Of a stretch of 64,000 nucleotides of DNA, positions 1-55,350 are shown one piece after another (the stretch's first letter is position 1; each line of letters starts with the position of its first letter). The notes below the pieces were generated by a model. The model did no database searches and had not been told where the DNA came from. It saw only the letters and a program-made list of their open reading frames with translations. The position numbers and the translations under genes are program-made. The DNA lies in the IMG/VR virus record IMGVR_UViG_3300033997_000136, positions 124,001 to 188,000 of that record; one strand, given 5' to 3'.

Positions 1-254
1 TCTAAATGTAACCAAAATAAACCAGTGTGGTGGATAGGTCTTACTCGTTCCTGTATTAAGAACCATCCACCTGGACACATCCAATACACTTTGGCCAATT
101 CTGGAAAACCACAGCGACCAAAGGTGTGTTCTTGTATGTTGCAAAGTAATCCTGTTAGGAATAATTTCCATGAACAGAACGAAGGGAATTTAATCGCATA
201 GTTAGAAACTAATAACACATAGCGCGTGGTTCCCTTGTGAAACTGAATAGACAT
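1..254 (-). CDS. Protein kinase-like protein, N-terminal part (runs off the window start)
   Basis: Not in the ORF track. Manual translation after an AGGTGG RBS: MSIQFHKGTTRYVLLVSNYAIKFPSFCSWKLFLTGLLCNIQEHTFG...GGWFLIQERVRP, open to the edge. GxTRxV..YAIK..QE resembles kinase subdomains I-III. Confidence 0.55.
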   Translation of the reverse strand, partial: MSIQFHKGTTRYVLLVSNYAIKFPSFCSWKLFLTGLLCNIQEHTFGRCGFPELAKVYWMCPGGWFLIQERVRPIHHTGLFWLHL

Positions 255-275
255 GTCACCACCTATTTATTCTAC

Positions 276-911
276 TTACGGATAACGAGCAGAGATGTAA
301 TGTGCAAAACGTTTTAACGCTTCCCATGTACGGTTTTTCCAACCGTTCATAAAATCTTCATTGGCTTCACGCTTCAATGAGATTTCAACGTAATGTACGT
401 TTTGGAATCCATCTAACAACATGTACAGTTGGTCTACTGCTTCAGAACTACCTTTGTTGCGTTTGAAATACGCATTTAAAGAACTGATGGTTTGACCGCC
501 AATTGAACCATCAATGGTAATATCAGGATAATCCACACTACGGCGGTTTAACACATTCAGTATTTTTTGGATAGATGTACCGACGTTACCACGACCAGCG
601 TTTACACCAAAATCCAATACCTTCTCAGCCAACATAGGACTTAATGCGTATATTTCGTGACAACGCATTTTCTCCCACCATGAGGTACGATATATCTCTT
701 GTGCCAATGCGATTGGAAGGGTTTTCATATCTCCATCCCAATTGTATTTTGGCCACAGGTGTTTGTGTTCTAATGCAGTAGCCACTGTGATACCATGATT
801 AGTGGCTTTCCCTGTATCGCTAGGATGGTCGACATATCCTGATTCAACACCACATAAGTGGTCGATAATTTCTTGTTCAGTCATTGCTTTAACTGGCATA
901 ATAAACTCCAT
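276..911 (-). CDS. Endolysin, glycoside hydrolase family 108 with C-terminal peptidoglycan-binding domain
   Basis: VESGYVDHPSDTGKATNHGIT matches the GH108 EGGYxxxPxDxGGxTxxGIT motif; DFGVNAG; C-terminal IDGSIGGQT and FMNGWKNR. Confidence 0.9.
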   Translation of the reverse strand: MEFIMPVKAMTEQEIIDHLCGVESGYVDHPSDTGKATNHGITVATALEHKHLWPKYNWDGDMKTLPIALAQEIYRTSWWEKMRCHEIYALSPMLAEKVLDFGVNAGRGNVGTSIQKILNVLNRRSVDYPDITIDGSIGGQTISSLNAYFKRNKGSSEAVDQLYMLLDGFQNVHYVEISLKREANEDFMNGWKNRTWEALKRFAHYISARYP

Positions 912-949
912 AACAAAAAAATAAAAGAAGAGGGAGTTTTCACTCCCTC
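912..949 (-). terminator. Intrinsic terminator hairpin
   Basis: GAGGGAGT-TTTC-ACTCCCTC (930-949), with an A-rich tract at 912-929 that is the U-tract on the minus strand. Confidence 0.7.
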
Positions 950-961
950 ACTTTTAAACTA

Positions 962-1216
962 TTATTGATTAAACAAAATACCAGAACGACTTTGCTCTAA
1001 TAAAGTGTTTAACTCATCTGTAGATTTCCCATCGCAAACCTTTGTTACATCTCTTAAAAATTCACGACGATTAAGTGCTGATATTTTTAATTCATCATCA
1101 CCTAATGCTACAGCTAACGTAATCTGACGATCATTTTCTTCAAACTGCCTTACTCGACGAAGACGAATGTCATCTTTGACCAATTGAGTAGCGGCGTCTA
1201 AGTTTACTTTAAACAT
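962..1216 (-). CDS. Tail fibre assembly/chaperone-like protein
   Basis: Start moved to ATG 1216 (GGAG RBS). IRLRR..DRQITLA..GD..R.FLRDVT pattern is typical of fibre chaperone C-terminal halves; lies downstream of a fibre gene. Confidence 0.55.
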   Translation of the reverse strand: MFKVNLDAATQLVKDDIRLRRVRQFEENDRQITLAVALGDDELKISALNRREFLRDVTKVCDGKSTDELNTLLEQSRSGILFNQ

Positions 1217-1497: not shown

Positions 1498-4041
1498 TTA
1501 ATTAACGGCCATCACAGACACGTATGGTAAATCGCGCGCATCAAAACCGTTAACGTTCGTACTTACGTTCAACGAGTTAACAGGTCTTGTATCACTAGAT
1601 TGTTGACTCACCGTACCGTCACCAGACGCATCATTATCACTAGCAAAACCAAATACAGCATAGTTAGTATTCGCTATAGAGTTCAGATAATTTATGCGAT
1701 AACGACCTTGTGAGATTCGAGTAATTGATGACACATTGCTTGAACGCTGGATAGAAGGGGTTGAGTTACCAGAACCCGTACCTAGCCATGCGACAAACAT
1801 AACGATGTTACCACCACCAGTTAACAGTGAATTTAACTGTTGCACTTGTGTAGCAGTCATCACACCCGCATTACCAGTGGTTGCAGCAGCGATAGCTACA
1901 GCACCGCCTGTGGACGAATACAGAGTGACATTACTACCGCCATATGCAGCACTTAGGTTAGTGCCCACATTGACCTGTGCACCGGCTTGGATGCCGTTTA
2001 GTTTAGCCTTATCAGAAGCACTTAACAAACCAGCGTAGCTAGTTGTTGCACCCAAAACAGTACCAGTAGCACCCGTTGATGAGTACATATAACCGTTAGT
2101 AGGGTCAGCACCATAACTAAGGTTAGTAGGAACGTTGACTTGAGCACCAGCTTGGATGCTGTCAATTTTCTGAATATAAGCAGCAGTAACAATACCTGCA
2201 CCTGATGCACTTGCTCGCGGTAAGTTAACACCACTACCTGTTGATGAATATACCGCCGCGTCAACTGTCGATTGTCCAACTGACAGATTAGTACCTACGT
2301 TCACTTGGGCACCAGCTTGGATACCATCTAACTTCGCTTTATCTGCTGCAGATAATGTACCAGCATTAGATTGCGTAGCAGCAGGAAATACTGTGCCGGA
2401 ACCCGTTGATGAACTTACTGTCACATTCGATGCGTTTGCCGTACTGCCTAAATTGGTTGGTACGTTGACTTGAGCACCTGCGGCGATACCATTCAACTTA
2501 GACAACAATGCGTCAGTAAAGTCGTTCTTACTTAATGCATAACCCGTCACTTTATCCACTTTCAAGTTAAGGGCGTTTTGTTGTGCAGTTGAAACAGGTT
2601 TATTTACATCACTGGTGTTATCTGCATTTCCCAAACCTACTTGTGCTTTGGTCACACTGTGTGGGTTATCCGTACGTGCGATGTGTGCGTTAAGTGGTGT
2701 AACCGCTTGTGATGTAATTGCTTCTTTGACACGCAGTGGTGTCATGTACTCAGTATTCACTGTACCAGCAACTGCTTCCGCAGTGGTAGCAATACCGTAG
2801 TTCTCCACGCTACCTAACCCCACTTGCGCTTTAGTGGTTGCATGTGGGTTATCAGTTCTGGCGATGTGTGCGTTTAACGGTGTTACAGCTTGAGCCGTAA
2901 TAGCCTCTTTGACGCGCAGTGGTGTCATATACCGATTAGATACAGTACCCGCAGTCGCTTCAGCAGTTGATGAGATTGGATAATCTTCGACACTACCTAA
3001 TCCCACTTGCGCCTTAGTCGTCGCATGTGGATTGTCAGTACGCGCGATGTGCGCGTTCAGAGGAGTCACTGCCTGCAATGTGATTGCCTGCTTTACTCTC
3101 AGGGGTGTCATGTAAAGAATGTTTGATGTACCTGTTTCAGCAGATGCTTGGTCAGATATTCCATAATTCTCTACACTTCCAAGTCCAACCTGTGCTTTAG
3201 TCGTTGAATGTGGGTTGTTGGTATTCACCAAGTGGTCAGTAATAGGTTTACCATTTCCTGTTTGGAAATAATACGTCATCGCTAACGGAGTCACATAACT
3301 CGTTGCTTGCAACGTTCCTAACATCTGAGCTTGAGTCGATAAACCGTAGTTCTGCACTAACCCTAATCCCACTTGCGCCTTAGTCGTCGCATGTGGGTTA
3401 CTGGTATTGTTGACGTGGCTGTTTAAATTAGCGTTAGTGGTATCGATGCGAGCATGAAGCTCAGCGTCTTTTAAATTTACCCACTGACGCATTTCATCAA
3501 ATGCAGCTTGGTCACCATAAAGAACAGCACGTGTACATCTGTCAACCGCTTCAACCACGTATTCAAAACCGTAGATGTCACCGATGTCATGTAAGTGATG
3601 TACTGGTGTAAATGCGTGAGGTTTGCCTAATAAGTCACCCCAGCGGACGCTGCGATTATCTAAGTTTAAGTTAGCAATTAACTCAAACAGAATATCAACA
3701 ACGCTTGTGTAACGACCACCCACATACCGCAAATCAACTGTAACAGCACTATCCACTTGCGGATTAGTGACTATGATAGCTGCCATGGTTTCTAAACCAC
3801 TGCGTTCACTTGCTTCTTTGTGATACATGACTGGTACGTAATCAACGACAGGAATCAACACACGACCTGTGATAGATTCACGAACCACTAAATCTTTCGT
3901 AGAATAGAAGCAACCCAAACGAGGGATGATAAGACGATTAACACCAGCAGCTAATGTGTGTTGTTCACCGCGTATGTAGTTTGAACTGAGTACACCTTCC
4001 AAATCTAGCGGAAGTGGGGTGGTGATAATAGTATCCGTCAT
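1498..4041 (-). CDS. Tail fibre protein with phiKZ gp145/146-like N-terminal anchor
   Basis: N-terminus SNYIRGEQHTL..IIPRLGCFY..YVGGRY; repeated NPHxTTKAQVGLGxVENY and GIQAGAQVNV units; C-terminal VAW..G..I..SSNVSSITR..GRYRINY receptor-type domain. Confidence 0.85.
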   Translation of the reverse strand: MTDTIITTPLPLDLEGVLSSNYIRGEQHTLAAGVNRLIIPRLGCFYSTKDLVVRESITGRVLIPVVDYVPVMYHKEASERSGLETMAAIIVTNPQVDSAVTVDLRYVGGRYTSVVDILFELIANLNLDNRSVRWGDLLGKPHAFTPVHHLHDIGDIYGFEYVVEAVDRCTRAVLYGDQAAFDEMRQWVNLKDAELHARIDTTNANLNSHVNNTSNPHATTKAQVGLGLVQNYGLSTQAQMLGTLQATSYVTPLAMTYYFQTGNGKPITDHLVNTNNPHSTTKAQVGLGSVENYGISDQASAETGTSNILYMTPLRVKQAITLQAVTPLNAHIARTDNPHATTKAQVGLGSVEDYPISSTAEATAGTVSNRYMTPLRVKEAITAQAVTPLNAHIARTDNPHATTKAQVGLGSVENYGIATTAEAVAGTVNTEYMTPLRVKEAITSQAVTPLNAHIARTDNPHSVTKAQVGLGNADNTSDVNKPVSTAQQNALNLKVDKVTGYALSKNDFTDALLSKLNGIAAGAQVNVPTNLGSTANASNVTVSSSTGSGTVFPAATQSNAGTLSAADKAKLDGIQAGAQVNVGTNLSVGQSTVDAAVYSSTGSGVNLPRASASGAGIVTAAYIQKIDSIQAGAQVNVPTNLSYGADPTNGYMYSSTGATGTVLGATTSYAGLLSASDKAKLNGIQAGAQVNVGTNLSAAYGGSNVTLYSSTGGAVAIAAATTGNAGVMTATQVQQLNSLLTGGGNIVMFVAWLGTGSGNSTPSIQRSSNVSSITRISQGRYRINYLNSIANTNYAVFGFASDNDASGDGTVSQQSSDTRPVNSLNVSTNVNGFDARDLPYVSVMAVN
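2620..3420 (-). repeat. Tandem ~56-58 aa coding repeats (NPHxxTKAQVGLGxVxxY...YMTPLRVKxAI)
   Basis: Five NPH..TKAQVGLG units are visible in the translation. These are fibre-shaft repeats, not CRISPR. Confidence 0.85.
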
Positions 4042-11510: not shown

Positions 11511-13559
11511 TTAATAAGGTACGTAAAACGTGACATATGCCACTAACGTCCGAGCTTCAGTTAACGTGATTGTTATCTGGTTTGAATTCGTTGTATCAAT
11601 CGAGGCAAAGATTGGATTGTTATCAATCGCATCTTTTAACACCACCGAGTAATCTTCCGTATTCATGTTGTGTGTGATACTTATGGTCTCAGTATCTGCT
11701 GAGGTAAAACGACGTGTAATTGCACGAACGTAAGATGCGTCACGTACATCATTAAATGGGTTTTGCAATTTACTTTTCAGCAATTGAACACCCACATACG
11801 CTTGTGTATTTGTATCGTAATCTTCAACTGTTCCCAATCTCAGATTTTCCACACTACCAAGACCCACCTGTGCTTTTGTTACAGCATGTGGATTCTCTTG
11901 ATTTGAAATGTGGTTTGTAATCTGTGTTTGAATTGGGTTAAACCATTGCAATAACACACTTGGCGTTAAATACGTTGTGTTACTATTCTGAGTTACATCA
12001 GTTGCCGTTGCAACAGCATAGTTTTGTACTAATCCTAATCCCACTTGGTCTTTAGTGACTTGGTGTGGATTGTCTCTAGCATCAACGTGAGTGGTTATTG
12101 TTGTTGCAACAAACGAGACCATAGCTTCTTTCACACGAAGTGGAGTCATGTAACTTGCGTTATCAGTACCCGCTTCAGCCACAACTTTTGTTGCAACCGC
12201 GTAGTTCTCTACGCTACCTAATCCCACTTGCGCCTTTGTAGTCGCATGTGGATTATCGGTGCGTTGAGTGTGAGCAGTCAATGGAGTAATGGCTTGTAAA
12301 ACAATGGCTTCACTGACTCGAAGTGGAGTCATGTATTTTGTGTTACTAGCTCCTTCTTCAGCTTCTTGTTTTGTAGCCACACCGTAGTTTTCAACATCAC
12401 TTAACCCCACTTGAGTCTTAGTCACTTGGTGAGGGTTATTTGTACTATTGATGTGAGACGATGTATCAGTTAAACGACCGTTAACAAAAGCAACGACACC
12501 CGCAGGTGTTGCGTAATGTGTGGTACTACCAGAGGTGTAATCGTCAATACCTGCTATTTCAAAGTTTTGAACATTACCTAAACCTACCTGAGTTTTGGTC
12601 GTGTTGTGTGGGTTACTTGTACTACTAATGTGTTGTACAATGGCTAAACCACTACCCGCAGCAAAATACGTCGCAAGAGACGCAGGTGTCATGTATTTAT
12701 CAGATGGAAGTGTTGTGCCACTCATGTCTGATGTACTTGCGATACCGTAGTTCTGAACGTTACTTAACCCCACTTGAGTTTTAGTGGTCTCATGTGGATT
12801 GTTCTTATCAGCGACGTGTTCTGCAACACCACCTTCAGAGAGCTGTGCAATTAATGAACGAGTTAATGAAGGTGTCATTAGCTTGTCTTGTGCACCAGCG
12901 CCATCTAAATCAGATAACAATGCTACTGCAAAGTTAGGCACATTGCCAAGACCTACTTGCTCTTTAGTGACTTGGTGAGGGTTAGCTAAGTTGTTGATGT
13001 GCTCGTCAGGAGTTTGACCACCTGTGTTTCCAGTGATAGCTTCTGCTAAGTTGTGAATACTTTCAACCAACTCAGTCGCACCTACCATGTCATCTAAATC
13101 CCACTCGTGGTCGATGACAGGGAAACCATACGGTAGTTCTTGAACTTCTTCCCATGCAGTGATACGTGGGTTTACTGCGTTGCTTAGCAGCAATTCTAAC
13201 GCACGTGCTTCATCAATCTGCCAATCACCACCTAAGTAACGAATACGTTCAACAGCGATTGTACCTGCAAGTGTTCTATCTAAAATACAGATAGCACCAT
13301 ATACAGGTTTTGCAGTAGCACGTGATGCACTAACAAACGGCCAACCTAAGTGGTAATCTACACCGTTCACTAGTTGACGACCAGATGGGTAATGGACTAG
13401 CTTTAAATCACGTTCAAAGAAAGGACCAGACTTTGGTACGATGAAATAAAAATCAGGAGTCACATCCGGTGGAGCAATGATGTGCTGTTCATCGGTGCGA
13501 ACGTTTGACGCAGCCGTCCCGGTAGGGTCAAACGGGTAACGTAAAGTAATATCAGACAT
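11511..13559 (-). CDS. Tail fibre protein with phiKZ gp145/146-like N-terminal anchor
   Basis: YPFDPTGTAASN..DEQH..FIVPKSGPFF..GVDY N-terminus typical of phiKZ-like fibres; seven NPHxxTKxQVGL repeats. Confidence 0.85.
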   Translation of the reverse strand: MSDITLRYPFDPTGTAASNVRTDEQHIIAPPDVTPDFYFIVPKSGPFFERDLKLVHYPSGRQLVNGVDYHLGWPFVSASRATAKPVYGAICILDRTLAGTIAVERIRYLGGDWQIDEARALELLLSNAVNPRITAWEEVQELPYGFPVIDHEWDLDDMVGATELVESIHNLAEAITGNTGGQTPDEHINNLANPHQVTKEQVGLGNVPNFAVALLSDLDGAGAQDKLMTPSLTRSLIAQLSEGGVAEHVADKNNPHETTKTQVGLSNVQNYGIASTSDMSGTTLPSDKYMTPASLATYFAAGSGLAIVQHISSTSNPHNTTKTQVGLGNVQNFEIAGIDDYTSGSTTHYATPAGVVAFVNGRLTDTSSHINSTNNPHQVTKTQVGLSDVENYGVATKQEAEEGASNTKYMTPLRVSEAIVLQAITPLTAHTQRTDNPHATTKAQVGLGSVENYAVATKVVAEAGTDNASYMTPLRVKEAMVSFVATTITTHVDARDNPHQVTKDQVGLGLVQNYAVATATDVTQNSNTTYLTPSVLLQWFNPIQTQITNHISNQENPHAVTKAQVGLGSVENLRLGTVEDYDTNTQAYVGVQLLKSKLQNPFNDVRDASYVRAITRRFTSADTETISITHNMNTEDYSVVLKDAIDNNPIFASIDTTNSNQITITLTEARTLVAYVTFYVPY

Positions 13560-28297: not shown

Positions 28298-29242
28298 TCA
28301 GCTTTGGTATTGTTTAGCTACCGCTGAAGCATCATCAATCGATGCACCAATGGCTTCTAAGTTAAATGAGAAGATTGAGTAAAATTCAATCAACTGGGCT
28401 AAGTTAAATAAGAAATCACCCATGGTCTTTGCAGTCACACCGGATGGTTTGTAAACATCAGGTTCTTCTTCAAGACGTTGCGCAAGTAAAGTTAGCAGTG
28501 GAATGATTGCATCTAACTTCTTCTGAACTACATCCCGTGGGATGGCATTCATTTGAAGAATAAGTTCGTTGTACAGTTTGTACACTTCAACCCAATCAGA
28601 ACTTCTGTCAATAATCTCACCGTAAGGTCTACGTTCAGCATTGTCACGACTAAAATCGCTTGCAAAGGCAGTTTTGAGTTTACTCACATCAATCGTTTTA
28701 AAACCACCTAAACGTTTATCTTGGTGTAAACTACTTAACGACTCAGGTGCATGAAGTAGTGTACTTAAGAAACGTTCTAGCGGTATCAGAATCTGTTCTA
28801 AAATAGGTTGCAGTGCTTGTTGAAACATCGCTTGATGGCGAAGATGTTCTATTAACGTTGTTTTCAAACCACGAGGCACAATGACTAACTTGTCCATTGC
28901 AGCAACATGCTTTGCTTTACCTAAATAGCTTTCAAAACGACGCTGATGTAAAAACACATCCTTTGTTTCAAAGAATGAAGTAAAGAAAGATTTTGCTGAA
29001 AACAACGCTTTAGATAGCGTGTTGCTAATTCTTGCTTTTGCCATCTCAGCAAACGCCAGAGTTTGTTGCCATGCAGTTTCTGCTTGCATAGTCATCTGTG
29101 TTGGGTCTTCTTGACGCACTTTATTTGCATCATCAATTAATTCGCAGTCTAAATTAACATCATTTAGACACGAAACTAATTCCTGTAGTGGTTCAGTCAA
29201 TGGACTGTTTAACTCATCTGGCATTAACGCTGGGTATGTCAT
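28298..29242 (-). CDS. Virion head protein (phiKZ gp153-like)
   Basis: Divergent from UvsX as in phiKZ; VIVPRGLK motif; acidic N-terminal propeptide-like segment. Confidence 0.6.
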   Translation of the reverse strand: MTYPALMPDELNSPLTEPLQELVSCLNDVNLDCELIDDANKVRQEDPTQMTMQAETAWQQTLAFAEMAKARISNTLSKALFSAKSFFTSFFETKDVFLHQRRFESYLGKAKHVAAMDKLVIVPRGLKTTLIEHLRHQAMFQQALQPILEQILIPLERFLSTLLHAPESLSSLHQDKRLGGFKTIDVSKLKTAFASDFSRDNAERRPYGEIIDRSSDWVEVYKLYNELILQMNAIPRDVVQKKLDAIIPLLTLLAQRLEEEPDVYKPSGVTAKTMGDFLFNLAQLIEFYSIFSFNLEAIGASIDDASAVAKQYQS

Positions 29243-35449: not shown

Positions 35450-35490
35450 AGGTGGGGGTCAAACCCCACCTGTTCTATTTTATTTTTTGT
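35450..35490 (+). terminator. Intrinsic terminator
   Basis: AGGTGGGG-GTCAAA-CCCCACCT followed by a T-rich tract. Confidence 0.7.
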
Positions 35491-35504
35491 TAGGATACTG
35501 GACA

Positions 35505-36575
35505 ATGATTAAGATAAGCAAACCTTCAAATTCACTTCCAAGTGATGGTGGTAAATTAGCACCAACTATGGCGAGCACGGGTCCTAAAGATAAGTTAGAA
35601 ACAAAAGACATTTATAATGCGGAATACGTTGAGCAGGCTGCTTCTGTTGCGAAATCTGCATTAGGGTTAGATTCACTATTACCACAACAAGATAAGAACG
35701 CAGCGTACAGTGTAGGTGGTTTTGCTGTCAGTGATATCTTAAACAGTGCAGTCACTGTAGGGACTGAAGTTTATTCAGGAACTGGCAATGGTTCTGTTAC
35801 AAATCGAATTAAGGATGTAACGGCTGGTGATGCGTACCGACGTTTATCACCTGATATGAAAACTGGGTTATTTAACACGCTATTAAGTAGCACAGGTTTA
35901 GCGGGTTCTGAAGCAACTGTTATTGTAGATGGTGTGAGCACAGCAATAGCCACTGAAGATATTGGTAATGTTACAAACCTCATGAGTCTTGTACAAGGAC
36001 TCACTGGAAGTCTTAGTGGTATCACTTACATGGATATTGGTGCAAAAGTGGCCTATGCTACTGCTGCGCTTGATTTGATTAATCAATTAGGTATTCCATC
36101 GCTTGCTGATAAAATCATCAACAGCATCGATGACAAGCGTGCTCGTGAAGAGATGATGATATCTCGCGCTACTATGTTTGCGCAATCTGCAGATATAGAA
36201 ACATTACGAAAGATTATTGACCTCGTTGGGTTAGATGGTCTTCTAGAACGAGTTCCGCGTCTTATTGAGTTTATTGTTGCTGGGTATTCATTCCCAAATT
36301 TAGAAGAAGGACAAGTCGTTGACTATCCAGCGCAGTACAGTCGACTACATGACTTTATGCAAATGGTTAATCCTAATTGGAACATGACAACTCGAAACAA
36401 TACACCAGTTGTTTCGTTTAAGATTTATTCAATGGGAAGTCCTGATTTTAAAGTGTTGTTTAAACGAGAAGATATTCATGTTGTTCCGTTATTAGCCGCA
36501 GAGCAATACCCTGAAGAATCGTTATCTGGTGTTATTCAAAAACATCACCCCATGATAACACTGTTAAATAATTAA
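35505..36575 (+). CDS. Conserved phiKZ-like virion/baseplate protein
   Basis: LAPT..TGPKDKL..DIY N-terminal motif is recalled from phiKZ-like structural proteins adjacent to gp182-like genes. Confidence 0.55.
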   Translation: MIKISKPSNSLPSDGGKLAPTMASTGPKDKLETKDIYNAEYVEQAASVAKSALGLDSLLPQQDKNAAYSVGGFAVSDILNSAVTVGTEVYSGTGNGSVTNRIKDVTAGDAYRRLSPDMKTGLFNTLLSSTGLAGSEATVIVDGVSTAIATEDIGNVTNLMSLVQGLTGSLSGITYMDIGAKVAYATAALDLINQLGIPSLADKIINSIDDKRAREEMMISRATMFAQSADIETLRKIIDLVGLDGLLERVPRLIEFIVAGYSFPNLEEGQVVDYPAQYSRLHDFMQMVNPNWNMTTRNNTPVVSFKIYSMGSPDFKVLFKREDIHVVPLLAAEQYPEESLSGVIQKHHPMITLLNN

Positions 36576-50000: not shown

Positions 50001-51355
50001 GTTCTACTCGGAGTATGGTGAAACGTACACGTGCGTATCACAAGAACTCACCGGGGATTGTATCTGAAGCATCAACAGACAGTGGTAGTGTAGGTGTAAA
50101 CGCGTACTTGGCTGCTAATGCGTTATTAACCGATGTGACAGGACGTCCTGACCAGAGTGCAAATAAGAAACTTGAGAGTAGTAACCTGTTTAGTACAACA
50201 GCATTGTTGTCACCTTGTATTGAACACGATGACGCCAAACGAATAGTTTTCGCTAACATTCAGTATTCACATGCGGTTGCGTGTTCTGGATATGAAGTGT
50301 CTCCATTCCGTACAGGAGAGGAGAAAGCGATTGCTCACCGAGTCGGTTCTTTGTTTGCAGGTGTTGCTGAAGAAGATGGTGTCGTCACTGAAGTAAGTGA
50401 CCATGCTGTGGTGGTTGAATACAAAGGTGGTAAAAAGAAATCATTTGAAATTGGAACACGATTTGGTAATGTGACAGGAACCACTGTACCTCACCGTCTT
50501 GTGACTGATTTAAATGTAGGTGATAAAGTAGATATGGGTGATGTAGTGACGTTTAACCAAGGGTTCTTTAAACGAGACCGGTTAGACAAACGTCAATGCA
50601 TGATGATGCCAGGTGTTCTTGCAAAGGTGGCTATTCTTGAAAAGAATAGTACATTTGAAGATGCGTGTGTAATCTCTCCACGTCTTGCTGGGTTGTTTAA
50701 AACCGAACTCACTGAAATTCGTTATATCACTGTACGTTTTGACCAACAGGTTAATAACTTAGTTCGTGTGGGTGCACAGGTAGACCTTGAAAGCATCTTA
50801 TGTACAATTGAAGACGCTGTCACTGCTGATAATGACTTATTTACTGCGGATAACATTGATTTGTTAACCACATTAGCAGCGCAAGCTCCTAGTGCAAACG
50901 TGAAAGGTCGTGTAGAACATATTGAAGTGCTCTATCACGGTGACGTAGAAGATATGGGTGAGTCTATTCGTAAGCTGGTTGATGAAAGTGATAAACAGCG
51001 TAAACGAAAAGCAAAACAGCTCAATGAACCTATTGTTACAGGTGCTGTAGATAGTTCGATTAAAGTAAATAAACAACCTGTTGAGTTAGATACTGCTGTG
51101 ATAAAGATTTACATCACAAAAGAAATCGACGCAGGGTATGGTGATAAAGGTGTTTTAGGTAATCAGATGAAAACGATTATCTCTGATGTAATGATAGGCG
51201 AACATGTCTCTCAGCGCACAAAAACTCCTATCGACATTTATTTCTCGTACTTGTCTATCGCTGCTCGTATCGTGGGGTCACCCGAGTTAATTGGAACCAC
51301 CATCACATTGTTAAAACTCATGAGTCCACGTGTGGCTGATGCTTATTTTGAATGA
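47006..51355 (+). CDS. Virion RNA polymerase, beta N-terminal subunit (phiKZ gp178-like)
   Basis: 1449 aa; NGTKWRMKKQ, GGTGGRS, PCIEHDDAKR..FANIQ, FEDA, GDK..GNQMK RpoB motifs. Confidence 0.92.
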   Translation: MKSYLQRIEELLQGDITLEAKYFKEFYRVYGIRNQSMLISPKVSPISAFEMPLESVAHHFSFDDVLLGPEPKGSVYSTNSGRVLIEHISALHDPVGKPLPAPGANAERLARDYHRRVKVFRPAQDFERSLRDNKTLVVENYALLNKLYRYQLSVYSNIYKWTNILRAAFFNLGKKVPMSDRQHYVFLELPAIIPDIVMLNQSSGAITAIKREFLEVFSKPEALMILELWKWMGKPIKQKVDGKETVGPRPSVFDYIAPEQLAKINLVWLDNGNWILLNLGTFVELSKMDKGEEIEGSNTVQRRFLRMLIMLMSQRVDVTETATDIESTIDADVAKEDIVETKHVVRDALKSIEANPYDDSDLPNLDIVQDEQLVSVDDVKSKEQQQIDEEIEIQKDLDMLRRLNERKLAPQAQTTIVDVVQPPKTPIERLNRKIEDKVEKGELTAAEYRRAKKLYDNMLALDNPFGDGKLQDFIVVFEELKQITEEESVKRIKNIRGVVDKSMLKSRVDVFDKKYVTQVMERHIAATMLSVQGAGLIATDLSVEEVVDVGNRYKTLRLRLSPLEGEGSTIVARIPVVDDEGTFLANGTKWRMKKQKADIPIRKTSPVEVALTTYYAKAFVHRSVKSVVNYPKWLNRQINLLEMADKGAVKITHVKRINTFVNDVTLPRIYTTLSMSFKELTIDKDLRLFVDYQHRFTEFGQSFVESVEREGFVFAGTLKGKPVVVDFVNMFYVVDNNQLLELGSFESLLKVSEQSVPTEVAEFSLFTRQVPVGIVLGYRYGLINLLGLLNTPFRRVLSGQQLNLAANEFAIRFSDETLIVSRVDKKAELILAGLNRYHASIKHYTLESFNNPDVFVNVLEENGFRIGFVRELDLAFDMFVDPVSADILISMNEPTTLEELLLRSCELLTTDAHPDEVDEYAMRYRGYERFAGHLYKELVSATRQFRSRGIGKAAKLSMNPEAVWQSIIGDSSCSPIEESNPVQNTKEKDIFTFGGTGGRSTRSMVKRTRAYHKNSPGIVSEASTDSGSVGVNAYLAANALLTDVTGRPDQSANKKLESSNLFSTTALLSPCIEHDDAKRIVFANIQYSHAVACSGYEVSPFRTGEEKAIAHRVGSLFAGVAEEDGVVTEVSDHAVVVEYKGGKKKSFEIGTRFGNVTGTTVPHRLVTDLNVGDKVDMGDVVTFNQGFFKRDRLDKRQCMMMPGVLAKVAILEKNSTFEDACVISPRLAGLFKTELTEIRYITVRFDQQVNNLVRVGAQVDLESILCTIEDAVTADNDLFTADNIDLLTTLAAQAPSANVKGRVEHIEVLYHGDVEDMGESIRKLVDESDKQRKRKAKQLNEPIVTGAVDSSIKVNKQPVELDTAVIKIYITKEIDAGYGDKGVLGNQMKTIISDVMIGEHVSQRTKTPIDIYFSYLSIAARIVGSPELIGTTITLLKLMSPRVADAYFE

Positions 51356-53010
51356 GGGAAAGTATGATTACGCAACAAGCAATTGAAGCTGTACAAAATG
51401 CTGCGGACAACTTACTGGGGGCAGGCTTTAAAGCCTGCCCCATCGTAGGAACTCCGTTGGCTGATTTAGTCTCACGTAGCCAAAACGTTGCGACGGTGGG
51501 GACGTCTATTCCATTAGAACGTTTAGTGGAAGCCACATCTATTCCGCTTTCAGAAGGTGGTCCATCAGCACACGATGTGTTCATGGAGAAGACGGTTGAA
51601 GTTGCCGGTAAAGTCGTTACCAATTCATTTGAGTTGACTCGTAATGTCATCACTCCTCTGGTAAAACAGTTGATTGAAAACTACGAAGCAACGTTAGGTG
51701 GTTTGGTGTATGATGTATTGCCACCGGCACGCATTTTACCTAATATCTGGAGCAGCATTTGGAGCAGCACACTGTTAGCAGAAATGGTAGCGAAGTTCAA
51801 AGACGTTCCATTGGAACTTCGTCCATTTGGTGTGAAGATGCCTGAAATGACAGCAAGTCAAATCAGAGCCATGTTAAAGACACGCATTTCACTTTTGGAT
51901 GCGTCTATTGAAAAGTGGTTCGATGACTTACCTGAAGACTTTGTTCACGAAACATGGACTCAGGTGTTTGTTTATCAAAACATTGCTATTGGTCGTCGTA
52001 CGAACTCAAAGTTCTCTTTGGATTCGACTACATTAAATCGTGATTCTATCTTGTTGGTGTATTTCATCAGTAAAGGTATGGAACAGGCGTTACCAGATGG
52101 TTTGAATGTAAGTCTCGATGCACTTCGCAAAGAACTGGTTCATTTACAAAACCAAGCTGCTCGCGCTGTGGCTCAGGAATTAGCATTCCGTGAAACCATT
52201 CAACGTTCGAATCTACTGGTTGCTTATGTGAATAAGACACCAAACAAAGACGGTTCAACGACGTACGATGTTGTGGTTAATAACGATGTCTATCTGAAGT
52301 TCTTAAGCGACCCTATGGGTAGTGCGGAAGCTATTTTGGGTAGTGCAGCATCAGGTGATGGTGTGTACATGTATTCTGCTTTGTTGGAAAACAAAGTGAA
52401 GTACGAAAACTTCTGGGCGAAAGCTTTAGGTGTGCATAATCAAAAGATTGCAGCGAACCGTTTCACGTTCCAACGCGATTCCTTGCGTTTAACGTTTAAC
52501 CGTTACATCAACAGTCAAGATGAAGCGAATCTTCCAGCGGTACGTGCTTATTTGCATGAGCGTGCAGCAAGCTTCATCAATAAACTGGAACCACGTGATG
52601 TTGTTGACCCAGTTGTCTGTATCCGCGATTTAGTGTGCTGTATTTTGTTTGCAGATAGCAACGCAGGTCAATTCTACAAATCGTTTGACCAGGTGGAGCT
52701 TGAAAATCCAAACATCAACACGCGTGAATGTGCGCTTTACGCAACGATTGATTTAGTGAGTCGTTGGTTAGCCTCACAAATCCTTCGCAAGTCAGCCAGT
52801 GAGAAAACTGAAGTCCCTGAAGACGGACGTTACCTTACTGTGTGTACGTTGTCGAATGCGATTACGTTGGGTGTGAAGATTATTCAGTCTATTGCAGGCA
52901 ATGAAATCAGTGACAGTACCGGTGGTAAGTTTGTTGACACAGACGAGCTACGTGTTACGTTTACTGCAAAACTGAACAGTTATGTTCACGTTGAGCACAG
53001 CACCAAGTAA
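51352..53010 (+). CDS. Virion structural protein (phiKZ gp177-like)
   Basis: Synteny between the vRNAP beta gene and the protease gene; ATGA overlap. Confidence 0.6.
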   Translation: MRESMITQQAIEAVQNAADNLLGAGFKACPIVGTPLADLVSRSQNVATVGTSIPLERLVEATSIPLSEGGPSAHDVFMEKTVEVAGKVVTNSFELTRNVITPLVKQLIENYEATLGGLVYDVLPPARILPNIWSSIWSSTLLAEMVAKFKDVPLELRPFGVKMPEMTASQIRAMLKTRISLLDASIEKWFDDLPEDFVHETWTQVFVYQNIAIGRRTNSKFSLDSTTLNRDSILLVYFISKGMEQALPDGLNVSLDALRKELVHLQNQAARAVAQELAFRETIQRSNLLVAYVNKTPNKDGSTTYDVVVNNDVYLKFLSDPMGSAEAILGSAASGDGVYMYSALLENKVKYENFWAKALGVHNQKIAANRFTFQRDSLRLTFNRYINSQDEANLPAVRAYLHERAASFINKLEPRDVVDPVVCIRDLVCCILFADSNAGQFYKSFDQVELENPNINTRECALYATIDLVSRWLASQILRKSASEKTEVPEDGRYLTVCTLSNAITLGVKIIQSIAGNEISDSTGGKFVDTDELRVTFTAKLNSYVHVEHSTK

Positions 53011-53023
53011 GTAAGGAACAAGT

Positions 53024-53752
53024 ATGGACTTAAAACAGTATAAGCGTGACGGTGCTAAGATTCATGCTTGTTTACTCGAACAAAGCGATGGTCATCAGAT
53101 CATCGCTAAACGGGATGTAAAGATTTACATCCCTACTCGTTTTCGAGATAAGAATCTTGCAACCATCGGGAGTGATATTTTTATCTTGGGTATTTACCTT
53201 ATTACAACGGAAGACGAATCGGGTAAGTATTACGCAGTTGAAGTGACCGATGCAATGATGCAAATCGAACCATCTAATGTAAATACAGTAACATTGGCTG
53301 GGGTGGAGATGTTTGAATTTGAATTCTTCAAAGGGGATGTTGTGGTCAGCAATACGCAGTTGGTTCAAAATGCGAAATTGTTGTATTACATCTTTGAAGA
53401 GTTTGTGGGTAAAGGAAACGTTCCGCCGTACATGAACTACATCGATATGTGTCGTACATTTTCTACAGCCACTAAACATGCCGGAGTGGTCTTATCCAGT
53501 ACACCCACCATACTGGAGATGCTCATTTCCATGATAGGTCGCGATCCAAAAGCACCTATGACGTATTTCCGCCAAATCACAAATGGTAAAGATTTTGATA
53601 ACGTGTTGTTTGTTCCACTTCGAAGTCCTATCTTTGGAGCAACAAACGCAACTGCAAAACTACTTGGTGCGTATCCGAATGATGCGATGACAAGTATTCT
53701 TGTAACAGAGTCAACCAATGTGGAAGATATTGAAACCATTCTGAGGGTATAG
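53024..53752 (+). CDS. Conserved phiKZ-like protein (gp176-like)
   Basis: KIYIP.RF, FVGKGNVP.YM.Y, ATNATAKLLGAY motifs; synteny. Confidence 0.65.
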   Translation: MDLKQYKRDGAKIHACLLEQSDGHQIIAKRDVKIYIPTRFRDKNLATIGSDIFILGIYLITTEDESGKYYAVEVTDAMMQIEPSNVNTVTLAGVEMFEFEFFKGDVVVSNTQLVQNAKLLYYIFEEFVGKGNVPPYMNYIDMCRTFSTATKHAGVVLSSTPTILEMLISMIGRDPKAPMTYFRQITNGKDFDNVLFVPLRSPIFGATNATAKLLGAYPNDAMTSILVTESTNVEDIETILRV

Positions 53753-53754
53753 CC

Positions 53755-54513
53755 GTGGCTGCTAAAGTAATTTTTGAAAACTTGATTTTGAAAGGGATGA
53801 ACAAGGGTGGTACGTTAAAGCCTGATGAAAAGGGCTATTACCCTTGTGTCGTTGGTGTGTTGGGTGCTGACGATTCTATTGGTGAACACTACTCGATTAA
53901 CGACCGTGTACGACAGGTGTTTGCAAATTCATCTCAGTTGAACCGTCGTGCAGCAGAAGGATTGTTGCGTGGTGAGTTTGGTCATCCAGACCCGATGCAG
54001 TATGCAAACCAGTTGGCTTTTGAAATTCGTGTTCGTCGTATCGATGAAAAATCTGAATCGCATCACATTCGTAAAGTGTGGTTAGAAGAAGGTGAAATCG
54101 ATGGACGTAAAGTCACGTTGATTATGGCCGATGTGCGACCACAAGGTCCGTACGGTAAGTTCTTAAAAGACGCATTGGACAACCCGGATTGTAATGTTGC
54201 ATTCTCTGGTCGCTATTACAGTAATCCAAGCAAAGTGGGTAATAAAGTCTATCGTGAGATTTATGCGGTAGGTACGTTTGATTATGTCACTGAACCTGGT
54301 CTACGTGGTAGCACAAAATACAACTCACCTCAGTTGCAATCTGCGTCTGTTCTGATGTTAGACATACATCAGATTCAATCGATTGTGGGTGCTGAAAAGT
54401 CAATGAGTTCTCAGCTACGGCAACAAACGATGCAATCAGGTGGTTTGACTGCGCAGCAGCTTTATGGTGATATTGTTCCGCAACACAAACCACGTAAAGC
54501 TTTAACATTCTAA
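53755..54513 (+). CDS. Prohead (head maturation) protease, phiKZ gp175-like
   Basis: LKPDEKGYY..VG, LRGEFGHP (catalytic His), AFSGR (catalytic Ser region), FDYVTEPG. Confidence 0.88.
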   Translation: MAAKVIFENLILKGMNKGGTLKPDEKGYYPCVVGVLGADDSIGEHYSINDRVRQVFANSSQLNRRAAEGLLRGEFGHPDPMQYANQLAFEIRVRRIDEKSESHHIRKVWLEEGEIDGRKVTLIMADVRPQGPYGKFLKDALDNPDCNVAFSGRYYSNPSKVGNKVYREIYAVGTFDYVTEPGLRGSTKYNSPQLQSASVLMLDIHQIQSIVGAEKSMSSQLRQQTMQSGGLTAQQLYGDIVPQHKPRKALTF

Positions 54514-54523
54514 CGGAGTTTAC

Positions 54524-55234
54524 ATGGGTGGTCCAACAAAACGAGATGTTATCAGTGCACTTCCTATTTTAACTCGGGATGTTGTTGATGTATTTACACC
54601 TGAGGAAGTAGGATATCCTGTATTGATACACATCAGTCATGATGCGTCTATCAAGAAGTTTATCCCACGGATATCAGGTCGGACAATGTCCGCTGAAGAT
54701 AAAACTGTTCCTCGTGTTAGTGTAGCACCCAGTATCTCTGAATGTGTAGCAGGTCATGGGTCTACGGATTGGTTCCATATTGACAACGGAGACTTTAACA
54801 AGCTCTGGCAGATTTATGGATTTGATTACGAGTATGCAGTTCAACCAAAGACGTCGTTGTTACCTGATGGTGCGGTTACAAACGAATATTGGTTAGTTAC
54901 GTACAACAAAGCGACAACTGAATACGTTCCGAAAAAGATAGGAACGTTTTTCTACTCGGCAATTACATACCGGAAGATTACGAAAGTAGTCGAATTCGAT
55001 ATGTACATTAACGCAGGGGAAAACGGGATTCGTTTTAGTGATGAAGTTTTCTTAGAGAAAGGATACTGGTTTATTAAAGGGAAGTTAGCGAAGAAGACGG
55101 TGAAGAAAGTAATGGCAGGTAAACCACTTGAGGTATTGGCTATGCGTCCTTCATCTAAATCTGAGTTTGACAAAGAACATCACGGGTTGTTTACGTTTCA
55201 ATCTGTAGGTGCGCGATTATCCTTGAATTGGTAG
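54524..55234 (+). CDS. Virion head protein (phiKZ gp174-like)
   Basis: LIHIS..KFIPRI..R...EDKTVPRVSVAP.I..C..G..E.WL motifs; Trp C-terminus. Confidence 0.7.
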   Translation: MGGPTKRDVISALPILTRDVVDVFTPEEVGYPVLIHISHDASIKKFIPRISGRTMSAEDKTVPRVSVAPSISECVAGHGSTDWFHIDNGDFNKLWQIYGFDYEYAVQPKTSLLPDGAVTNEYWLVTYNKATTEYVPKKIGTFFYSAITYRKITKVVEFDMYINAGENGIRFSDEVFLEKGYWFIKGKLAKKTVKKVMAGKPLEVLAMRPSSKSEFDKEHHGLFTFQSVGARLSLNW

Positions 55235-55239
55235 ATAGT

Positions 55240-55267
55240 ATGGATAACGGGTTATACCGTTATCCAT
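55240..55267. terminator. Terminator hairpin
   Basis: ATGGATAACGG-GTTATA-CCGTTATCCAT followed by CTTTT. Confidence 0.75.
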
Positions 55268-55286
55268 CTTTTATGCCGTTTTATAA

Positions 55287-55350
55287 AAATTTAAAAACCT
55301 ATATAATGGTTTTGATATGATAAATAGAAAACCCCACGGAGATTGCTATG
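55287..55350 (+). promoter_or_regulatory. Putative early promoter plus leader
   Basis: AAATTTAAAAACCTATATAATGGTTTTGATATGATAAATAGAAAACCCCACGGAG, aligning with 20860-20912. Confidence 0.55.

Follow-up and report, generated by a model that had tools for sequence, protein, structure and literature searches.

Glutamine in place of glutamate at the predicted cleavage sites of a prohead protease and head proteins in a phiKZ-like jumbo phage

The protease gene and its surroundings

The window, by which is meant the whole stretch of 64,000 nucleotides that was analysed, corresponds to bases 124001-188000 of one 213,150-bp virus record, which according to IMG/VR is a linear contig. The record originates from a subsurface metagenome, and the phage, which is uncultivated, is a phiKZ-like jumbo phage. 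In run X1 it is present at very high depth. Its genome also carries a phiKZ-type capsid protein, a portal, and virion RNA polymerase subunits, and in the window the homologs of phiKZ gp177 and gp176 are followed by a protease gene, as in phiKZ (Table 1). Judged by the protease, the nearest deposited phages are Burkholderia phage SURPRISE13 and Ralstonia phage RSL2, both with less than 42% identity. No close relatives turned up among phage records when the region was compared to them by megablast, nor did the capsid protein, used alone as a query against IMG/VR, retrieve any relative.

The protease gene starts with GTG. The translated protein matches the Pfam family PF20034 (Peptidase_S80) with 200.2 bits (E 3.6e-59, profile positions 1-210 of 229; the curated cut-off is 23.4 bits), and phrog_3014, head maturation protease, with an E-value of 1e-57. 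H77, S151, and D176 occupy invariant columns in alignments of 107-110 S80 members, and correspond to H77, S153, and D178, the catalytic residues of the SPN3US protease (PMC5694885). An AlphaFold2 model, built on an alignment without three rows taken from annotated phage records, has a pLDDT of 86.6. When this model was compared to known structures using Foldseek, the top three matches were chains of 5JBL, the structure of T4 gp21 (probability 1.0, TM 0.54-0.56 by target), and herpesvirus proteases were found lower down in the list. The fold is that of T4 gp21 and herpesvirus assemblin. A profile search of the PDB sequences with the window protease gave no match. A second S80 paralog was sought in the whole genome and not found, and this is the sole S80 gene. 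The gene product is an S80 prohead protease as shown by its sequence, catalytic residues, fold, and context, while its cleavage of head proteins and of itself is inferred.

Table 1. Genes, predicted cleavage sites, and the candidate specificity loop. Positions are those of the window unless marked as genome positions.
Feature	Position	Strand	Basis
gp177-family head protein	51352..53010	+	phrog_3841
phiKZ gp176 homolog, virion structural protein, in gp177-gp176-protease block	53024..53752	+	41% identity to phiKZ gp176; phrog_2926, E 3.2e-69
Prohead serine protease, MEROPS S80/phiKZ gp175 family, 252 aa	53755..54513	+	PF20034, phrog_3014, aligned catalytic residues H77/S151/D176, fold
Protease loop, residues 38-42 (A-D-D-S-I)	53866..53880	+	Q-type/E-type differences
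Predicted first autocleavage site S-P-Q-L-Q195↓S196 (QLQS, residues 193-196); P1 codon CAA 54337-54339	54331..54342	+	Alignment column
Predicted second autocleavage site T-M-Q227↓S228 (TMQS, residues 225-228); P1 codon CAA 54433-54435	54427..54438	+	Alignment column
Conserved gene directly 3' of the protease, 236 aa; predicted substrate with short C-terminal tail	54524..55234	+	phrog_5043, E 2.6e-37
Predicted C-terminal site T-F-Q226↓S227 of this neighbour (TFQS, residues 224-227)	55193..55204	+	Aligned T-L-E↓H in sister
phiKZ gp153-family head protein, 314 aa, acidic N-terminal propeptide	28298..29242	-	phrog_4682, E 4.3e-28
Predicted propeptide site T-M-Q53↓A54 of the gp153-like protein (TMQA, residues 51-54)	29081..29092	-	Propeptide length, P1' Ala
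Capsid protein	genome 53676-55859, outside window		Homology to phiKZ capsid protein
Portal	genome 63560-66292, outside window		Homology

The gene directly downstream of the protease had been labelled gp174-like in an initial annotation made before any database search. This label failed; the protein matches only phrog_5043, whereas phiKZ gp174 belongs to phrog_5028, and the actual gp174 homolog of phrog_5028 is found at 35487-36575. Members of phrog_5043 also follow the protease gene in the SPN3US-like phage SPFM4, and an ortholog is found in the same position on the sister contig described below. The label gp153-like, given to the head protein at 28298-29242, held, and phiKZ gp153 itself matches the same phrog_4682 (E 2.9e-92).

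Glutamine at glutamate positions in the protease tail and in head proteins

Relatives of the protease were collected using a word-indexed search, which gave 23 metagenomic relatives, and an exhaustive search, which gave 150 representatives, and were placed in a joint MAFFT alignment (n = 173). In the column of Q195, where the family motif is S-P-x-L-E↓S, Glu is found in 164 of the 173 proteins and Gln in five. The column of Q227 (family motif S/G-x-E↓S) contains Glu in 163 proteins, and Gln in the same five. The only proteins with Gln in both tail columns, here called Q-type, are the window protease, P0001 (97% identity), P0002 (64%), P0004 (61%), and P0005 (58%). The E-type protease P0003 has Glu in both columns and reads SPQLE↓S at the first. 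Having Glu at P1 of both tail motifs is a feature of family membership which the window protease lacks; its membership by fold and catalytic residues is unaffected.

In phiKZ gp175 the two tail columns are occupied by ALE-210 and GFE-240, which are placed by alignment only and are not confirmed autocleavage residues. In the SPN3US-type protease the second column holds ATE-234. AQE-203, a proven autocleavage site of the SPN3US protease (PMC5694885; PMC10052503), sits about eight residues past the first column, within the same linker. In a strain variant from another run both CAA codons of the tail are kept amid flanking synonymous changes and an S196C substitution, and Cys at P1' of the first tail site is found in P0004 and P0005 as well. 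Cleavage after Q195 is inferred, and would give a mature protease consisting of residues 1-195 with a predicted mass of 21.9 kDa.

In the phylogenetic tree the five Q-type proteases and P0003 form a six-member clade with support 100/99-100/100. The Q-type proteases make up one side of a branch with support 92/86, which drops to 77/58 without the tail columns. A single change from Glu to Gln suffices on this tree; this is the simplest history, but it is not proven.

P0003 is encoded on a metagenomic contig of 203,677 bp (NODE_66), which also carries the capsid protein P0026 and is here called the E-type sister. Its protease is 60% and its capsid protein 52% identical to those of the window phage, and the two phages share gene order, site positions, the Thr at P3, and the Ser at P1'. 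They differ in that the sister has Glu at all eight aligned sites where the window genome has Gln, and at protease positions 38, 40, 42, 113, and 115.

Stronger support than that from the sites noticed initially comes from two genes outside them, those encoding the capsid protein and the portal, with three and two (N-terminal) exchanges of Gln for Glu relative to the sister, respectively. The capsid propeptide contains the motifs MTLQ40↓S, TVQ85↓S, TLQ126↓S, and TQQ147↓S, and no T-x-E-[SA] remains in it. P0026 has TLES, TMES, and TQES where the window-genome protein has TVQS, TLQS, and TQQS. The last of these lies 20 residues ahead of the conserved ASRQD, which is the same spacing as for GLE163↓N164 of phiKZ, where cleavage between Glu163 and Asn164 is supported by biochemistry and a cryo-EM model (PMC11297242). 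The position of Q147 is homologous to this experimentally known site, while the cut after Gln147 is inferred. The portal has Gln at residues 210 and 273 facing Glu in the sister, and its S-F-Q709↓A, which faces T-L-E↓A, is a possible ninth exchanged site. At residue 167 T-L-E↓S is retained in both genomes. Two further Q-type proteases can be paired by sample with a capsid protein, P0005 with P0025 and P0004 with P0027, and both pairs are all-Gln. The capsid protein P0028, whose close sister is the all-Gln P0027, is mixed, with Gln at two sites and Glu at the maturation site; the corresponding protease was not recovered.

Ten residues before its end the downstream neighbour reads T-F-Q↓SVGARLSLNW, as opposed to T-L-E↓HEGPTLSLNW in the sister. 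The predicted propeptide of the gp153-like protein is 53 residues long, compared to 52 in phiKZ gp153, which is processed at SQE-52↓A53 (PMC5694885), and both have Ala at P1'. Relatives of the gp153-like protein at 88-91% identity keep T-[MV]-Q-A, and the homolog search found only relatives that were 88-100% identical, with no E-type ortholog close enough for a comparison of columns. T-L-Q↓G also occurs in two internal head proteins (residues 75-77, 129-131, and 73-75). The N-terminal T-Q-Q-A of the gp177-family protein is not counted as a switching site because the sister has T-N-Q-T opposite to it. Inferred from its sequence, this protein has no convincing Gln-type site and is likely to be unprocessed here. 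Some of its homologs lack processing too, SPN3US gp243 among them, and SPN3US gp214 is another unprocessed homolog of a protein that is processed elsewhere.

The initial annotation had proposed that the protease cleaves after Gln, based on four tetrapeptides (QLQS, TMQS, TFQS, and TMQA), and all four are present in the translations at the positions listed in Table 1. Its statement that homologs generally read SPxLES held as well, given the 164 of 173 S80 proteases with Glu. Gln was confirmed to sit in the Glu column of the homologs for both protease sites and for the C-terminal site of the neighbour. For the gp153-like protein the claim held only in part; the TMQ↓A site is at a position comparable to the SQE↓A of phiKZ, with a propeptide of similar length, but the two are in different alignment columns. 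The suggested motif x-[L/M/F]-Q↓S/A is corrected to T-x-Q↓S/A, since P3 is Thr; as inferred from the sequences, P1' is sometimes Gly or Cys.

The exchanges were also evaluated across genes, and are more frequent than expected by chance. The 23 orthologs shared by the window genome and the sister loci were aligned pairwise, and among alignable glutamines Glu was found opposite 7 of 11 in the context T-x-Q-[SAG], as opposed to 34 of 433 other glutamines (Fisher p = 8.7e-6). The seven are the three capsid sites, portal 210 and 273, protease 227, and neighbour 226, and protease Q195 makes up the eighth exchanged site. T-[LMVIFQ]-Q-[SAG] was observed 10 times in the window-genome orthologs with 1.9 expected (z 5.5). 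The Glu form was observed nine times in the sister orthologs with 2.5 expected (z 4.4), and the reciprocal form was not enriched in either genome. An unbiased scan of seven ortholog sets for columns with Gln in all Q-type sequences and Glu in the sister returned five, protease 195 and 227 and capsid 85, 126, and 147, while the reverse pattern was found in three unrelated columns. At these five sites four Q-type lineages, 48-64% identical, are all-Gln. A k-mer enrichment covering the whole proteome did not rank T-x-Q, because the motif is limited to a few head proteins. All covarying sites are encoded by CAA, which is one transversion away from GAA, the dominant Glu codon. Across the genome CAA accounts for 68% of the Gln codons, which makes it the major one, and about 1,900 further glutamines are encoded by it.

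T-x-E-Q was considered as an alternative cleavage motif (34 observed, 11.6 expected), and was rejected as it is spread evenly across non-structural genes. Matches to T-x-Q-[SA] in tail-fibre proteins and in a spanin were set aside as not belonging to the head.

Possible change of the P1 residue and rival explanations

The reading that we find most likely, with a probability of about 0.7, is that P1 changed from Glu to Gln by co-evolution of the protease and its substrates in the Q-type clade. The family membership, the fold, the homology between the Gln and Glu positions, and the coordinated all-Gln and all-Glu states are shown, while cleavage after Gln is inferred without any data at the protein level. 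It also counts against this reading that monophyly of the Q-type proteases has support of only 77/58 once the tail columns are excluded. According to this reading the protease would become part of the prohead, as its counterparts do in phiKZ and SPN3US. Inside it would trim long N-terminal propeptides, with several short motifs each, from the major capsid protein, the portal, and the internal head proteins before cutting off its own C-terminal tail. The T-x-E↓S of the closest Glu-type relative would have become T-x-Q↓S/A in both the enzyme and the substrates of a small clade. The capsid protein would be cut after Q85, Q126, and Q147, and probably also after Q40, leaving a mature protein of residues 148-727 (63.6 kDa). 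Predicted cuts in the other proteins are after Q210 and Q273 in the portal, Q195 and Q227 in the protease, Q226 in the neighbour, and Q53 in the gp153-like protein, and T-L-Q↓G in the two internal head proteins would probably be cut as well.

In the catalytic domain all Q-type proteases differ from all E-type proteases at five positions only, 38, 40, 42, 113, and 115. Position 38 is Ala in the Q-type proteases. Position 40 is Asn in 158 of the 173 family members, Asp or Ala in the Q-type proteases, and Ser in the sister. The AlphaFold2 model places residues 38-42 in a turn following the strand 29-36, and residues 113 and 115 at the tip of the hairpin formed by residues 101-129. It is conceivable that the loop and the two hairpin residues set the P1 preference, but this is a conjecture, as there is no structural evidence as to where the S1 pocket is.

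The rival that must be taken most seriously is relaxed specificity, where the protease of this lineage would accept both Glu and Gln at P1 and the sites would drift without any strict preference. This is possible. The T-L-E-S at residue 167 of the portal is retained in the window genome, P0028 mixes Gln, Gln, and Glu at the three capsid sites, and changing ten or more essential sites logically needs a tolerant intermediate. Drift should, however, yield mixtures in every genome, while the four Q-type lineages are all-Gln at five sites and the sister all-Glu at eight. The retained Glu of the portal also sits in a propeptide that would be lost in any case through cuts further downstream. Both this site and the mixed P0028 might as well reflect an incomplete switch as a Glu-tolerant enzyme. 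The all-or-none states argue for a real preference, even if a tolerant intermediate must have existed, and a co-evolved switch as proposed in the initial annotation is supported with relaxed Glu/Gln specificity not excluded.

Two further explanations are regarded as very unlikely. The Gln motifs might not be cleaved at all, being lost or vestigial sites or coincidences, with maturation taking place at other, unrecognised sites. Proteomic evidence is lacking, and the unprocessed homologs in SPN3US show that processing may be absent for individual proteins. Against this, T-x-Q-S is enriched and has been kept across phages that are 48-64% identical, inside propeptides that otherwise evolve fast; the catalytic triad is intact, and the capsid propeptide has no T-x-E-[SA] left. 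Cleavage by the protease is essential in SPN3US (PMC10052503). Alternatively, Gln could become Glu, or be read as Glu, before cleavage, through site-specific deamidation or recoding of CAA, and the enzyme would still be Glu-specific. Each covarying site is indeed encoded by CAA, but this is simply the major Gln codon, used for so many other glutamines. The window yielded no tRNA gene and no deamidase was noticed, and a change in the enzyme itself is suggested by the positions at which the catalytic domains of the Q-type and E-type proteases differ.

The co-evolved switch can also be given a bolder form. The change of P1 from Glu to Gln would then be strict and heritable, with every essential site in at least five head proteins recoded by the single step from GAA to CAA, and caused by a few substitutions at positions 38-42 and 113/115. 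We are inclined to doubt this version, though not by a wide margin. As to a selective force, bacterial CBASS enzymes can, according to a recent preprint, be switched on through cleavage of their activation loop by prohead proteases (PMC12991175). Evading immunity that senses the protease in this way could have favoured the switch, but this is pure speculation.

Significance and comparison with known systems

All characterised prohead proteases of the T4 and phiKZ lineages cut after Glu, and it is not known why, nor how the pocket reads this residue. Here nature provides two enzymes of about 60% identity whose substrates are all-Glu in one case and all-Gln in the other, and comparing them leaves five positions as candidate determinants. 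The case also shows a path by which an enzyme with many essential substrates may change its specificity, with intermediates visible in the mixed capsid protein and the retained portal site. In jumbo phages, site predictions and semi-specific proteomic searches that are built on Glu would overlook all sites of the Q-type clade. If host defences sense the prohead protease via decoy loops, a change in specificity could be a route of counter-defence.

A search of the full-text literature found no Gln-specific prohead protease, and the published cleavages of phiKZ, 201phi2-1, SPN3US, and T4 are all after Glu (PMC5694885; PMC10052503). Picornavirus 3C and the coronavirus main protease also have Gln at P1, with Ser, Ala, or Gly as the small residue after it. 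They are chymotrypsin-like cysteine proteases of RNA viruses and unrelated to the S80 family, so the analogy is functional only. T4 gp21 (PDB 5JBL, MEROPS S77) is the best structural match and shares the role in prohead maturation and the self-processing, but it cuts after Glu in L/I-x-E, and the profile search of the PDB revealed no sequence similarity. The closest characterised counterparts are phiKZ gp175, the type peptidase of MEROPS S80, 201phi2-1 gp268, and SPN3US gp245. With these the window protease shares the Pfam family, the catalytic His, Ser, and Asp, the gp177-gp176-protease block, a tail with two motif sites, multiple cuts per propeptide as predicted here, and the putative substrates, which are the capsid protein, the portal, the gp153 family, and internal head proteins. 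The sequence identity is about 27-33%, and their sites are S/A/G-x-E and A-x-E, while those predicted here are T-x-Q↓S/A. With cleavage after Gln being inferred, the window protease would depart from the S80 family in a single feature, universal until now, the Glu at P1 of its sites.

Exceptions to the all-Gln pattern

The genome is otherwise of the Gln-type, with Gln at the predicted P1 cleavage positions where most S80 proteases have Glu, but T-L-E-S is kept at residue 167 of the portal protein. An identical T-L-E-S is found at the matching position in the portal of the closest Glu-type relative (the E-type sister), and S-M-E-S of the phiKZ portal (residue 175) aligns near it. In one relative, two propeptide sites of the capsid protein (P0028) are Gln, but its maturation site is Glu. 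P0028, whose accompanying protease was not recovered, is a candidate for an intermediate stage in the Glu/Gln switch.

P0030, an S80 protease encoded on a 72-kb metagenomic contig, is more distant than the Gln-type clade (43% identity). Both its tail P1 columns are Leu (P-N-L-L↓S and G-T-M-L↓S), and its loop at residues 38-43 is longer and altered. This might represent a second, independent specificity change.

C-terminal ends and short motifs

Trp is the last residue in 125 of the 173 S80 proteases, while the protease of the present genome has Phe. The neighbour protein, encoded directly downstream of the protease, ends in LSLNW both here and in the E-type sister. Conceivably, the ends of the two proteins are a shared prohead-targeting tail that is cut off by cleavage.

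Two tail-fibre-like proteins have tandem repeats of about 61 residues with recurring QVGL, and this explains which tetrapeptides show the greatest excess in the proteome. T-x-E-Q, for the most part as L-T-x-E-Q, displays a three-fold excess in the whole genome (34 observed, 11.6 expected). It was rejected as a cleavage motif since it occurs across all gene classes, and is probably a helix-capping habit.

Genome ends and abundance

The first 1,085 bases of the contig reappear at its end with 34 mismatches, so the record may be a complete genome, terminally redundant or wrapped, as against an estimated completeness of 77%. In one subsurface run the contig's word depth, noted for the protease region, was about 4,100, and the phage was therefore blooming there. 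A different run from that study also contains a strain that co-occurs and is roughly 12% divergent.

Coordinates of the features discussed
Feature	Position	Strand	Remark
Tail-fibre-like protein	window 1498-4041	-	5 QVGL
Tail-fibre-like protein	window 11511-13559	-	7 QVGL
Protease region	window 53700-55300
Protease C-terminal end	window 54490-54513
Neighbour C-terminal end	window 55205-55234
Portal	genome 63560-66292		outside window
Contig start	1-1085		outside window
Contig end	212066-213150		outside window
P0028	L011:10001-12157
P0030	L020:6001-6810
SPFM4 protease	L015:1480-2283

The SPN3US-like protease of SPFM4

Autocleavage at A-Q-E-203 has been reported for SPN3US, whereas the SPN3US-like protease of Salmonella phage SPFM4 has A-Q-K at this residue; ATE-234 and AQE-246 are both kept.
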